Positions 46,501-52,500 of a stretch of DNA of 64,000 nucleotides are shown one piece after another; within the stretch, counting starts at the first letter, position 1; the number at the start of each line of letters is the position of its first letter. Under the pieces are notes generated by a model. It was not told the origin of the DNA, ran no database searches, and saw nothing but the letters and a program-made list of their open reading frames with translations. Origin of the DNA: Paragordius varius (lineage: Eukaryota > Animalia > Nematomorpha). The stretch is taken from the NCBI GenBank assembly GCA_964247055.1, contig OZ176054.1:2604001-2668000 (forward strand). Direction: 5' to 3'. The position numbers and the translations under genes were made by a program.

Positions 46501-49500
46501 CATGGTTTTTTTTAAATAGCTCATTAATACTGATAATAGTTAATTAGAAACTAATAAACAAATTATAATTTTTTTATTGATGAACGGTTATATACCAGTG
46601 TTATTTATTTAAAAAATTAACGGGTTAAATAAAATATTTTTCCTGGCGCAAGGGCCGTGCTCTATAATACCAACAAATATTGCTCAGCTGTTAGACTCAA
46701 CAAGCATCACAAAATTATATTAATTCAGGGTCATAAAAGCCCTTTTAAGGCCGCGGTTTAAGTACCACTAATATATACTATTATCGCGTTAAATGTATCA
46801 AGATGATTAAAGAATTTTTTGTGAAATAATGCGTTGTTATAAAAATATGTAATAATTTATGGGCGGAAACGATAATATACGTAAATTATGGTTTATTAAT
46901 ACCACAATTTATTATCTCTTTGCATTATAAATTAATGATTTAAACAAACCAAAAAAAAACATTTTATTTTTTAAAACTCATGAAGTTATTCAAAATTTTC
47001 CAAATTTATAGTTTTTCGTGCTAAAACCATTGTTTAAATCAGGGGTATTCAACACGCGGCCTGCATGCGGCCCTCTAAGACTTTATGTGCGGCCTGCGAA
47101 AAATTTGGAAAGATTCATAATTTGCAAAAATATCCGCACAACATCTTGGTGAAATTGATTTTCTTAAATAAGTTTGTAAATAAGTTTATTCTATGGGCAA
47201 CAAACTTCAAAATTGTGCTTGAATTCAACAGTTTTAAAATCTATATATATATATATATATTTCAAGAGCGGTCCGCCTGTTTTGGGTCAAAAATGCGGCC
47301 CTCGAAGCCGTTTGTGTTGAACACTCCTGGTGACATTCATAGTTACAGAGGATGAGCCCTTTGAAAATGAGGGAGATTATATTGATCATTATTCGCATCT
47401 TTTCACAAAAAATTAAAATACATTTTGTTCAAAATATTTGTTCAATTTTGTATTATATTGTGAAGATTCGTAGATGACCCTAAAACAAGAGTAATCTTAG
47501 AAATAAAGGAGTCCACAAAATTTGCTTTTTAAAAGTTGCTGAGCATAACTCTAAAGTACCATATATTTTATTTTTAGAGCAGCAATCTTTTAAAAATACC
47601 TCTAGTAAAATTTAGCAAATTTTTGTTACTGCGAAAATTATCTGTTTACACGTTAAAATCCAATTATCTGTTTCTAATTAAGTCACAGCTAAGCGGGCGC
47701 GATTCGAATTTAAAAAAAATATATGTTGATTTAAATTACGTAGAACGGCGTAAACATTATGAGATAAAAATCGCAGCTTGATGTAGGTAAAATCAAATAC
47801 GTTCCGAAAATGTTTGGACAAACAATCAAATCATGATTAAATTCAAAGTTTTAAAAATTAACGCAAAATCGATAATGGGAAAACCCCTAAATGAATATTA
47901 TACAGAAAAAAATATATGTTTAAATTTAGCGCGTTAACTATCTAAGGTATGAAACACTTTTGTGAAAATGAGGTAATTTTAAATTTATAGGCGTTTCTGT
48001 TTCATCTTGTATAATAAAATTTTAATAGGAATACTTTTTTTCTTCCGATTGTTTTGGTTTAAGATCAAACATAGATGAGAATGAGCCGCCATCATTCGTA
48101 ACTATTAATTTATAAGATCCTTCATCTGTAGGCAAAACATTCTATAAAATACGTATTTTTTTACATAACATGAATTAAATAATTTTAGGTGAATACACCT
48201 ATATATCGGCAATTAATTGGTTTAAGGTGTCTTATATCAATTTTCAATATCAATAAATTTGGTTTTCTGAACAGAATATAAATTTTTATTACTGCATTGA
48301 GTAAACATTTGAGCTCTACCATATATTTTTTAGAAAAAATAAAACACTTATTGTAGCAATCAAAATCTTTGTTGAAATATAATTTATAAATCTAAATTTT
48401 TTTATATCATAAATATGGTTAATGTTTTTTAATTCCCTCGTCCCTTGCTTTGTGGTATATACAAAAGGCATGTGTTAAATTTATGGCTATTTTTCCAAAC
48501 TTTTGGACCAATATACCTTGATAAAAGTTTTAAGATTATTTCGCTTCAAAATTACGTTTAGCAAAAGTTTTAAGATTTTTTCTCTTCAAAATTACGTTTA
48601 GCAAAGGGTGTCTAAACATTTCTATCGTAATAAACTATAATAGTTATGAGAGATTTTTAAACAGTTAAAGTAGCATTTATAATCGGCTTTTTAATGCACT
48701 TTGTTTTCTGTGCATTCATTTCACTATTAGGTTTATCCTTAAGTTTTTCAAACTCTCTACAAATTAGTGTTTCCTAAAACGTAAAAAGGATCGCAAAATA
48801 TTACACATTATAAAGAATGGTATTTAAATACAAAATTAATGACATACATCAACATGAAGTTCATAATAAATAGTTCGGTTTCCGTTGGCATCAGGTAATT
48901 GAGATGCAACAGATTTTTTATAAAATATTCTATTACGGACAGGTGAATCTGGGACATTGAGAGGTTTTTCATCTTTTACCCATTCTAATTTAGGATTTAA
49001 ATCATTTGAGGTTGTTATAAACGCGAAAACGGCTGTTAAATTTTTTCCTTCTGGGCCTGTGTAGGATATTTTCGGTGATTCTAGTGTGGATTTTATGATA
49101 CTTTGACGCCTCCATAAATTTTTTGGTGGTGATTCTTATGGATATCAAAAAACAATTGGTAAAATAAAATACACTTTTATTGATATAGGTTATTAAATAC
49201 CTCCTTGTTTGGAATCAGCCTTCTTATCTTCTTTTTTAAGAGATTTTTTCAATTCGTCTGCTTTTTTAGCTTCAGCAGCTTTTTTGTCATCTTCAGCCTT
49301 TTTAAGGTCGGCTGCTTTTTTGGCTTCAGCAGCTTTTTTGTCGTCTTCAGCCTTTTTGAGCTGGGCTTTTTTCAGTTCATCCGCTTTTTTAGCTTCAGCT
49401 GCTTTTCTGTCATCTTCAGCCTTTTTAAGCTGGGCTTTTTTCAGTTCATCCGCTTTTTTAGCTTCAGCTGCTTTTCTGTCATCTTCTGCCTTTTTAAGGT

Positions 49501-52500
49501 CGGCTGCTTTTTTGGCTTCAGCAGCTTTTTTGTCGTCTTCAGCCTTTTTGAGCTGGGCTTTTTTCAGTTCATCCGCTTTTTTAGCTTCAGCTGCTTTTCT
49601 GTCATCTTCAGCCTTTTTGAGTTGGGCTTTTTTCAGTTCATCCGCTTTTTTAGCTTCAGCTGCTTTTCTGTCATCTTCTGCCTTTTTAAGGTCGGCTGCT
49701 TTTTTGGCTTCTGCAGCTTTTTTGTCGTCTTCAGCCTTTTTAAGGTCGGCTGCTTTTTTGGCTTCAGCAGCTTTTTTGTCGTCTTCAGCCTTTTTAAGGT
49801 CGGCTGCTTTTTTGGCTTCAGCAGCTTTTTTGTCGTCTTCAGCCTTTTTGAGCTGGGCTTTTTTCAGTTCATCCGCTTTTTTAGCTTCAGCTGCTTTTCT
49901 GTCATCTTCTGCCTTTTTAAGGTCGGCTGCTTTTTTGGCTTCTGCAGCTTTTTTGTCGTCTTCAGCCTTTTTAAGGTCGGCTGCTTTTTTGGCTTCAGCA
50001 GCTTTTTTGTCGTCTTCAGCCTTTTTAAGGTCGGCTGCTTTTTTGGCTTCAGCAGCTTTTTTGTCGTCTTCAGCCTTTTTGAGCTGGGCTTTTTTCAGTT
50101 CATCTGCCTTTTTAGCTTCAGCTGCTTTTCTGTCATCTTCAGCCTTTTTAAGGTCGGCTGCTTTTTTTTCAGCAGCTTTTTTGTCGTCTTCAGCCTTTTT
50201 GAGTTGGGCTTTTTTCAGTTCATCCGCTTTTTTAGCTTCAGCAGCTTTTTTGTCATCTTCAGCCTTTTTAAGGTCGGCTGCTTTCTTAGCTTCAGCAGCT
50301 TTTTTGTCGTCTTCAGCCTTTTTGAGTTGGGCTTTTTTTAATTCGTCTGCTTTTTTGGCTTCAGCAGCTTTTTTGTCATCTTCAGCCTTTTTAAGGTCGG
50401 CTGCTTTTTTAGCTTCAGCAGCCTTTTTGTCGTCTTCAGCCTTTTTGAGCTGGGCTTTTTTCAGTTCATCTGCTTTTTTAGCTTCAGCTGCTTTTCTGTC
50501 ATCTTCAGCCTTTTTAAGGTCGGCTGCTTTTTTAGCTTCAGCAGCTTTTTTGTCGTCTTCAGCCTTTTTAAGCTGGGCTTTTTTCAGTTCATCCGCTTTT
50601 TTAGCTTCAGCTGCTTTTCTGTCATCTTCAGCCTTTTTAAGGTCGGCTGCTTTTTTAGCTTCAGCAGCTTTTTTGTCGTCTTCAGCCTTTTTAAGCTGGG
50701 CTTTTTTCAGTTCATCCGCTTTTTTAGCTTCAGCTGCTTTTCTGTCATCTTCTGCCTTTTTAAGGTCGGCTGCTTTTTTGGCTTCTGCAGCTTTTTTGTC
50801 GTCTTCAGCCTTTTTAAGGTCGGCTGCTTTTTTGGCTTCAGCAGCTTTTTTGTCGTCTTCAGCCTTTTTGAGCTGGGCTTTTTTCAGTTCATCTGCTTTT
50901 TTAGCTTCAGCTGCTTTTCTGTCATCTTCAGCCTTTTTAAGGTCGGCTGCTTTTTTTTCAGCAGCTTTTTTGTCGTCTTCAGCCTTTTTGAGTTGGGCTT
51001 TTTTCAGTTCATCCGCTTTTTTAGCTTCAGCAGCTTTTTTGTCATCTTCAGCCTTTTTAAGGTCGGCTGCTTTCTTAGCTTCAGCAGCTTTTTTGTCGTC
51101 TTCAGCCTTTTTGAGTTGGGCTTTTTTTAATTCGTCTGCTTTTTTGGCTTCAGCAGCTTTTTTGTCATCTTCAGCCTTTTTAAGGTCGGCTGCTTTCTTA
51201 GCTTCAGCAGCTTTTTTGTCGTCTTCAGCCTTTTTGAGTTGGGCTTTTTTTAATTCGTCTGCTTTTTTGGCTTCAGCAGCTTTTTTGTCATCTTCAGCCT
51301 TTTTAAGGTCGGCTGCTTTCTTAGCTTCAGCAGCTTTTTTGTCGTCTTCAGCCTTTTTGAGTTGGGCTTTTTTTAATTCGTCTGCTTTTTTGGCTTCAGC
51401 AGCTTTTTTGTCATCTTCAGCCTTTTTAAGGTCGGCTGCTTTTTTAGCTTCAGCAGCTTTTTTGTCGTCTTCAGCCTTTTTAAGCTGGGCTTTTTTCAGT
51501 TCATCCGCTTTTTTAGCTTCAGCTGCTTTTCTGTCATCTTCAGCCTTTTTAAGGTCGGCTGCTTTTTTAGCTTCAGCAGCTTTTTTGTCGTCTTCAGCCT
51601 TTTTGAGCTGGGCTTTTTTCAGTTCATCTGCTTTTTTAGCTTCAGCAGCTTTTTTGTCATCTTCCTGTTTATTTTCTAAATTTGAGCGAAGATGGAAAGG
51701 CGGAGAAGTAAATGATTTGTGAGTGATTTCATCCTCAATAATGACCGTGTACGATCCTACGAGAGATTTCAACACAACATCAGATGGTATTAGTAATCGC
51801 AAAACGTTCTCATATGTATCTGTAGATGTTGACGTGTTAGTTATGTTGTGTTTGATAGAAGATTTGGTAATATCAACTCCATCCCTATAATTAAATTAAG
51901 CGATTAATCCAAATTCATTCAAACATATAACCAATGAAAATACCTGAACCATGAGATTTTACATTTGGCTCCACATTTGTATTTCAATACGAATTCTGCA
52001 TTAGCAACTTTCGTCAACACCTTTATGTTAATTACATTTAATATACATATTATCTTATTATATTTATATAATTTTAATAGATTTAAATATCATTTGCATT
52101 TTAATTAGCGCTGGATATCCAAATAATATCGCAAATGTAACAACATAAATAATTTATTTATTCACTCTATCAAAAGTCTTAATTTAAATTAGTCATTATT
52201 TTTCTTATCTTTGTATATAAATTTTGCGCATAAAGTCATTACCAAAACCCTGGACTAATAGTTAGAGACTTCATTATTTTATTTTTTCGTACAACATGAA
52301 TGGTAGTTTTATGTCCCATAGTCGTTTAAATCTATTGTTTTGAAAATCCATTTGGATATTATTTCATTAAAAAAACATTGTTCTACTGTATTGGATAATT
52401 ACAGTCTCTAAGTTACAGAGTCTAAAATTGGGAGAGCTCCAAAACACGATTGATATAAACAGCTGATAAACAATAAATATTAAGTGTTGACTGATAAAAT

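Follow-up and report, generated by a model that had tools for sequence, protein, structure and literature searches.

What would a regular, 821-residue array of Lys, Ala, Asp and Glu do within a very large muscle-type protein? This question is raised by a 64,000-nucleotide stretch of the hairworm Paragordius varius (contig OZ176054.1, positions 2,604,001 to 2,668,000; referred to as the window in the following), in which most of one very large minus-strand gene of the twitchin/projectin type lies. A first, sequence-only reading of the window had pointed to a charged repeat in this gene as a candidate helical spacer or spring of about 120 nm. The analysis presented here arrives at a related answer, to which we give about an even chance: the repeat is translated and folds by itself into a long, solvent-exposed, monomeric alpha-helix, which would serve this twitchin-type protein as a spacer or spring in the manner of a single alpha-helix (SAH).

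The repeat is contained in one exon. This exon and its surroundings comprise the following parts (a slash marks a splice boundary):

49201-51884, minus strand: the whole exon—Ig-like back half, linker and repeat—as defined by directly read splice sites, frame, translation and length
51665-51884, minus strand: Ig-like back half and linker, 73 amino acids (aa), with Ig strand motifs; the front half is in the upstream exon ending at 51944 (...KCKISWF)
49202-51664, minus strand: 821-aa K/A/D/E/L tandem repeat, 40 units of 18, 23 or 17 aa, predicted to form a long alpha-helix
51885-51943, minus strand: upstream intron, 59 nucleotides (nt), GT..AG
49135-49200, minus strand: downstream intron, 66 nt, GT..AG, acceptor cataAG/AATCACC
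48848-49134, minus strand: next exon, with a linker and the front part of the next Ig-like domain (...IYYELHVD); donor GAT/GTATGT
48034-48141, minus strand, edges approximate: exon with the back part of that next Ig-like domain (local Ig profile E 0.0064; Pfam I-set E 0.11)

The exon ends were read directly from the sequence. The acceptor ...aattatAG is followed by GGATGGAG at 51884, the donor CAAGGAG/GTATTT comes after 49201, and the donor of the upstream intron comes after ...TCATGGTTCAG at 51944; GT..AG is canonical on both sides. The exon measures 2684 nt, which leaves a remainder of two on division by three, and 49202-51883 (minus strand) translates in frame to 894 aa. Residues 1-73 of this product begin with DGVDIT and comprise the second half of an Ig-like domain and the short linker that follows it; residues 74-894 form the repeat. 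The latter is built of 19 18-mers, 17 23-mers of the type AEDD[K/R]..., two 17-mers—each of them with one Ala deleted—and two end units, and a hexad x-x-acid-x-K-K underlies these units. Its composition is 32.9% K, 28.9% A, 14.9% D, 12.2% E, 7.2% L, 2.3% Q and 1.3% R; there is no Pro, no Val and no aromatic residue, and the sole Gly is the final residue. Tandem Repeats Finder describes nested periods of 54, 69, 123 and 246 nt across 49245-51664 with scores far above chance (2340 for period 246 and 1755 for period 123). The host genome is AT-rich, and the only long minus-strand open frame over the array spans 49193-51802. The sequence-only reading had placed about 40 units at 49201-51884, which agrees with the exon and the unit count; its length of 808 aa is corrected here to 821 aa, and its statement that Pro, Gly and aromatic residues are missing is right for Pro and the aromatics and overlooks the one Gly at the end. 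A Pfam match of the repeat exon to Plasmodium_HRP was discarded as a low-complexity artefact.

The way in which the units vary argues for translation. Fifteen nucleotide sites differ among units of the same type, 14 of them synonymously and one by a K/R replacement. The 18-mers (n=19) have four variable sites, all in third positions, and the 23-mers (n=17) have 11: nine third positions, one synonymous first position (CTG/TTA) and one AGA/AAA change (R/K). For random changes in this codon mix, we estimate that roughly 20-30% would be synonymous. Unit lengths of 54, 69 and 51 nt are all divisible by three, and both exon edges run in phase into Ig-like modules across short introns (59 and 66 nt). 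No GT dinucleotide occurs in the 2464 nt of the repeat, hence there is no canonical internal donor by which the array could be trimmed; skipping the exon would break the frame, as its length leaves a remainder of two and it carries half a domain. A transcript with this exon, to judge from its splice signals, cannot splice the repeat out separately. Two plus-strand frames are likewise open across the array, so that openness by itself is no proof of coding. It is very probable that the repeat is translated within the twitchin-type protein.

That the repeat is spliced in frame between Ig domains, as proposed earlier, is borne out by phase and splice sites; the flanking pieces themselves are to be called Ig-like only. 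Domain calls were made exon by exon, per open frame, and the two single-exon pieces that directly flank the repeat (51665-51884 and 48848-49134) gave no Pfam match. Strand motifs and weak local profile matches hint at the Ig nature of both.

The charges of the repeat are arranged as expected for an isolated helix. Opposite charges are spaced at i+3 in 357 cases and at i+4 in 217, against about 152 expected from shuffled sequences, whereas like charges are found at these spacings in only two and 26 cases, against about 155 expected. An opposite partner at i+/-3 or i+/-4 is available to 500 of the 503 charged residues, which confirms the earlier observation that the KK pairs lie three to four residues from acidic ones. 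The densities of opposite-charge pairs equal those of a caldesmon-like protein and of the ER/K region of P0048, a transcript fragment discussed below. Overall, the net charge is +59, i.e., +3 per 41 residues or +0.07 per residue, and the charges are well mixed (kappa-like index 0.04) at a charged fraction of 0.61. The Fourier spectrum of the charges peaks at 5.86 residues. At periods of 3.5 and 3.6, the Fourier power of L and of A+L is close to zero; the best occupancy of heptad a/d positions by L/I/V/M/F/W/Y is 0.19, no heptad register is maintained along the array, and in each register no residue outnumbers Lys. The super-unit of 41 residues is a multiple of neither 7 nor 11. The repeat thus has the dense i/i+3 and i/i+4 opposite charges with few like charges that characterize SAHs, is free of a hydrophobic seam, and lacks the persistent heptad or hendecad pattern with hydrophobic a/d positions of a coiled coil. 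From the six-residue period, which corresponds to 240 degrees per unit, we infer that the KK pairs spiral evenly around the helix, with 18 residues making up exactly five turns, and that the Leu positions rotate by 140 degrees per 41-residue super-unit. The mean helix-propensity cost amounts to 0.27 kcal/mol on the Pace-Scholtz scale.

Structure prediction points in the same direction. AlphaFold2 was run without an alignment on repeat pieces of 200 and 300 aa. The shorter piece was predicted as a single helix over residues 2-199 (198 residues) with a mean predicted local distance difference test (pLDDT) score of 92.6. The longer piece was helical except for a break at 153-159 (mean pLDDT 85.4) and was folded into an antiparallel helical hairpin. 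The hairpin is presumably a modelling artefact, since the broken unit has the same sequence as 18-mers that stay helical, and the 200-aa model shows no break at these residues. A search of the PDB with 246 aa of the repeat gave no match at E <= 1, and a two-copy complex prediction (123 aa each) ended with a score of 0.00 and no verdict; it was used neither way. The repeat is probably helical according to these models. The preference of the sequence-only reading for a helix over a PEVK coil is thereby upheld—by the charge pattern, the absence of Pro and the continuous helix of the AlphaFold2 model.

Several findings weigh against a helical spring of this kind. For predicted natural SAHs, about 80% of the positions are charged or Asn/Gln, and Asp is rare (PMC5812594); the repeat has 61.3% charged residues, or 63.5% with Gln, and more Asp (14.9%) than Glu (12.2%), which places it outside the composition of this class. 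The description as a typical charged SAH given by the sequence-only reading hence stands for the charge network and the missing seam, and falls for the composition (63.5% charged or Gln, Asp 15%, Ala 29%). Aggregation was seen in designed peptides once they had three or more Ala per heptad (PMC5812594), and the repeat comes near this level with about 2.5 Ala plus Leu per heptad. The favoured orientation from acid (i) to base (i+4) is sparse (0.07 per residue). Also, the confidence of AlphaFold2 on a low-complexity single sequence should be taken as weak evidence. As to expression, none of the RNA sequencing runs searched was found to contain the locus, and the four best runs with the locus are genomic DNA, as their contigs cover introns. 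The length of the array is that of the assembly, as short-read contigs cannot span it. On self-comparison, stretches of 296-299 nt recur without mismatch at offsets of 123 and 789 nt; such near-identical units and exact runs of about 300 nt imply that the array has expanded recently, one step being an internal duplication of about 0.8 kb, and that it is young and possibly length-polymorphic. Finally, a word search with the 161 aa across the junction (Ig half and first repeats) gave one irrelevant match and no orthologue.

Which alternatives might account for the repeat as well? The one that survives best, though we consider it unlikely, is a translated repeat that is largely disordered—a well-mixed polyampholyte that would act as an entropic spring, with the function of PEVK and another chemistry. 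A charged fraction of 0.61 with well-mixed charges is what such a polymer would have, Asp at 15% is a poor residue in the middle of a helix, and the charges come in pairs (DD, KK), as in designed repeats of the E2K2 type that were reported as non-helical (PMC5812594). Moreover, the segment adjoins the position of the disordered PEVK of projectin (PMC3835035). Against disorder stand the Ala content of 29% with Pro and, up to the last residue, Gly absent, the opposite partner of nearly all charges at i+/-3 or i+/-4 together with the avoidance of these spacings by like charges, and helix pLDDT values of 85-93, where disordered segments usually score low.

A helical repeat might also associate instead of staying alone. 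Pairing or bundling, be it as a coiled coil or by Ala-packed antiparallel contacts, could cross-link twitchins or fold the segment back and shorten the arm. Such an arrangement is improbable in our view: there is no 3.5-residue periodicity and no persistent heptad register (a/d occupancy 0.19), the 41-residue super-unit fits neither 7 nor 11, and a net charge of +59 disfavours self-association. What speaks for it is that Ala and Leu make up 36% of the residues, that Ala-rich charged peptides can aggregate (PMC5812594) and that the 300-aa model is an antiparallel hairpin, the break of which, however, falls within a unit whose identical copies are helical, and is gone in the 200-aa model.

As a third alternative, the main role of the repeat might be electrostatic, with a basic helix lying along a polyanion such as F-actin or the thick-filament surface and tethering the filaments or damping their sliding. 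The net charge of +59 and a KK pair every six residues would suit this role. There are precedents for the binding of polyanions by SAH-type helices: that of INCENP is reported to bind microtubules (PMC4571873) and the KER of CAF-1 to bind DNA (PMC10335832). The net charge density is low, however (+0.07 per residue), with acids that nearly balance the lysines, and nothing in the sequence is specific to a partner. It is improbable as the main role; binding to actin or the thick filament may be an alternative or additional one.

That the array is a neutral or non-coding minisatellite which happens to be open, or an assembly artefact in its presence or length, is very improbable: near-identical units with exact runs of about 300 nt, two open plus-strand frames, the lack of an RNA run with the locus among those searched and short-read contigs that cannot span the array would fit this explanation, but the variation among units is 14:1 synonymous in the minus-strand frame with all indels in frame, both exon edges are in phase with Ig-like modules across canonical short introns, no internal GT donor could remove the repeat, and both edges recur in independent read sets of an array that is single-copy in the assembly.

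The latter two statements rest on the following data. The array occurs once in the 110.5-Mb assembly of 44 contigs, and both exon edges are seen in independent short-read contigs of three samples from two studies (run X1 at 48825-49273, X2 at 51702-52012 and X4 at 51635-52355). The same reads allow for some further observations. Variants at about half depth are present in run X1, and some of them in X2, at 48031-48187 and 48538-48543, in the intron and exon that come after the repeat, which indicates heterozygosity in the sequenced material. Run X3 is labelled as another organism and has near-identical flanks and repeat words, which indicates the same or a very close species. In the upstream introns at 52331-52724 and 52922-53700, the summed contig depth exceeds that of the single-copy flanks about 100- to 1000-fold, and variant joints are numerous; the pattern suggests very high-copy dispersed repeats, possibly akin to miniature inverted-repeat transposable elements (MITE-like).

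How would a single helix of this length work? In the proposed mechanism, two things would stabilise the helix: the high helix-forming tendency of Ala, Lys and Leu, and ion pairs of Lys with Asp or Glu at i/i+3 and i/i+4. The x-x-acid-x-K-K period would spread the charges evenly around the helix, leaving no hydrophobic seam. The helix would presumably stay monomeric. The segment would then be a semi-flexible spacer with a contour length of about 123 nm (821 x 0.15 nm). The persistence length of ER/K helices is about 15 nm, and with this value the root-mean-square end-to-end distance would come to about 55-60 nm. The 120 nm of the sequence-only reading can thus be kept as contour length and should be given up as reach. 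Under low force, the helix might unravel reversibly toward about 300 nm (0.36-0.38 nm per residue). It would form a soft element of nearly constant force in series with the N-terminal Ig chain and a Pro/Ser/Thr-rich segment of the same protein, acting between the twitchin core bound to the thick filament and the N-terminal anchor. Such behaviour is known from SAHs: their unfolding is non-cooperative and takes less than 30 pN, they refold as the length drops, they behave as springs of constant force, and in constructs with I27 domains of titin on either side they remain helical (PMC4183817). It is a tentative proposal, and rather a doubtful one, that the repeat, at about 820 residues and about 123 nm, is longer than any other single alpha-helix so far known from nature, that it follows a hexad code of Ala, Lys, Asp and Glu in place of ER/K, and that it offers twitchin a constant-force spring as a helical alternative to PEVK.

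The placement of this putative spring depends on the gene around it. Two further parts of the same gene are needed here:

41157-42644, minus strand: Pro/Ser/Thr-rich open frame of 495 aa, followed by six Ig domains and the Fn3-Fn3-Ig core
1900-3690, minus strand, span approximate: kinase domain in several small exons

Pfam found fn3 and I-set domains on single exons. In addition, Ig and Fn3 profiles were built from the complete domains of the window itself and used to scan all minus-strand open frames. This local scan gives a regular Fn3-Fn3-Ig order from 34936 down to about 9500 and more Ig/Fn3 modules to about 4000. The kinase exon at 2433-2648 (minus strand) matches the twitchin kinase structures 1KOA, 1KOB and 3UTO with E values of 7e-26 to 1e-25, and scores weaker against MLCK4 (5e-17) and titin (1e-10). 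The kinase is succeeded by a few more Ig domains, which extend to about 2.1 kb outside the window, past its start; another gene begins there. In the N-terminal part, about six Ig or Ig-like modules (60.7-51.7 kb) precede the repeat and one Ig-like module (49134-48848 plus about 48141-48034) succeeds it; then come the 495-aa frame at 41157-42644, six Ig domains (39.4-35.0 kb) and the core. With a twitchin-like kinase, a Fn3-Fn3-Ig core and N-terminal Ig tracts, the gene has the twitchin/projectin architecture by its domain order, and the assignment to twitchin made by the sequence-only reading is supported (kinase match with E of about 1e-25 versus 1e-10 for titin).

Some features of the gene are worth recording beside this architecture. 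The kinase domain at 1900-3690 is spread over six or more small exons, each with about 35-70 codons, and some nearby Fn3/Ig exons have 200-330 codons; introns range from about 60 nt to several kb. The 495-aa frame at 41157-42644 is rich in Pro, Ser, Thr and Ala, has no Pfam match, and carries two PGPHML(K/R) motifs as well as basic RRxS motifs (RRPS, RRIS) near its end. The latter we take to resemble PKA-type phosphorylation sites, as in the regulatory linkers of molluscan twitchin. In the N-terminal tract (48848-49134, 53746-54123 and 56127-56381, minus strand), clear I-set modules alternate with a second Ig-like kind that has the motif (N/T/E)P(K/R)LEW(V/Y/F)K(D/N), no Cys and a long middle loop, and that Pfam does not recognise from single exons. 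A family of open reading frames with similar protein is found at 58387-58686 (plus strand), about 72900-73170, and about -51100 to -52200 (minus strand) relative to the window; its members, inside the gene and beside it, are probably dispersed remnants of a mobile element.

Is such an insert known elsewhere? A phmmer search of 1.84 billion representative proteins, with all 894 aa of the exon as query, returned 246 matches at E <= 1e-3, the best of which has 143.6 bits and 34% identity. This is no true homologue, since a homologous 821-aa array would score far higher. The matches belong to unrelated architectures, among them a Plasmodium protein with AMA-1/EBA-175 domains, a PIAS-type SUMO ligase, a LysM protein, a caldesmon-like protein, an apical-junction-molecule-like protein, a myxobacterial kinase and cyanobacterial hypotheticals; the caldesmon-like protein ranks among the best look-alikes. 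Among the 150 matches listed, Ig domains are found in one, P0048, the transcript fragment with an ER/K-type region before two I-set domains. The similarity to P0048 is compositional; a search with P0048 led mostly to unnamed fragments and to one weak named match, nexilin. Among the 1.84 billion representatives, a charged tandem array of helical type was found in no twitchin, projectin or titin; hairworm proteins are perhaps absent from this set, however, and HMMER down-weights biased composition. A feature search of the ESM Atlas gave no usable match, and the literature searched held nothing relevant on the repeat peptide motifs and nothing useful on hairworm muscle or twitchin.

If the repeat is expressed and helical, it would add a third kind of element to those that shape the passive elasticity or filament spacing of muscle. 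The springs known from the titin family are chains of Ig domains in tandem and disordered segments rich in Pro. A spring based on the helix-to-coil transition would differ from these: as it is stretched 2-2.5-fold, its force stays low and almost constant, and it refolds quickly (PMC4183817). It would also mean that Ala-based hexads containing Asp can support isolated helices far longer than the ones examined to date, which would widen the rules of SAH predictors. With its perfect 18/23-residue modularity, the repeat is also a ready natural template for helical rulers of set length. Should the repeat be species-specific and tolerated rather than used, it would be just a curious young coding minisatellite.

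The closest counterpart by position is found in insect projectin, which is arranged as 8 Ig - PEVK-NTCS-1 - 6 Ig - 14 x [Fn-Fn-Ig], with a hypervariable PEVK-NTCS-1 segment of 34-624 aa (PMC3835035). By its place before six Ig domains and the core, the Pro/Ser/Thr-rich exon at 41157-42644 occupies the PEVK-NTCS-1 position, and the K/A/D/E repeat is an additional insert, one Ig-like domain N-terminal of it. The repeat has in common with PEVK-NTCS-1, which is thought to give extensibility, that it is a fast-evolving insert of unique sequence which forms no domain and lies within the Ig region near the N-terminus. The novelty claimed by the sequence-only reading is thereby narrowed: the repeat itself occurs in no twitchin among the representatives searched, but projectin has a variable insert nearby (PMC3835035). 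In its make-up, the repeat departs from PEVK, that of vertebrate titin included. PEVK is rich in Pro, Glu, Val and Lys, disordered, and encoded by many small, alternatively spliced exons without a perfect tandem array, whereas the repeat has neither Pro nor Val in 821 residues, is predicted to be helical, and consists of 40 near-identical units in a single exon without an internal donor.

Close look-alikes by composition also occur in bacteria. Domain II of TolA is long and alpha-helical and includes a Lys/Ala-rich tandem repeat of 5-6-residue units, and the E. coli array consists of 15/18-bp repeats whose copy number differs between strains (PMC3477136). The 18-mers of P0028 of Lactococcus cremoris, a hypothetical, membrane-anchored protein of 294 aa (array at about 97-189), match the repeat unit at 15 of 18 positions, in sequence of low complexity. 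Matches to such bacterial Lys/Ala/Glu/Asp repeats reach only 40-144 bits for the 894-aa query and lie in unrelated architectures; unlike the hairworm repeat, TolA-type stalks are set in the bacterial periplasm or surface, have much shorter arrays and are without Ig/Fn3 partners. The likeness to TolA and P0028 probably reflects convergence in a four-letter alphabet, toward one way of building a long isolated helix, rather than homology.

Within the sarcomere, myomesin has short helices between its Ig domains—of about 20-25 residues each and packed on the neighbouring Ig domain—while here one 821-residue helix-forming segment is inserted once. One report counts alpha-helices among the mechanical building blocks of myomesin, a sarcomeric Ig-domain protein (PMC4142248).

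The SAHs of myosin-10, caldesmon and INCENP share with the repeat the high charge, the missing seam, the dense ion pairs, the predicted isolated helix and the role to be expected, that of a spacer and constant-force spring. Differences lie in the chemistry—Asp makes up more than half of the acids, Arg is almost absent and Ala reaches 29%—and in the length, with 821 residues versus 97 for the experimentally characterised SAH of myosin-10 (PMC4183817). We hence do not file the repeat as an ER/K SAH domain; as a charged helix based on Ala, it probably functions in the same way. A unique extensible insert in the N-terminal Ig region is an established element of the titin family, and what the hairworm gene probably adds to it is a new chemistry, regularity, predicted structure and length.

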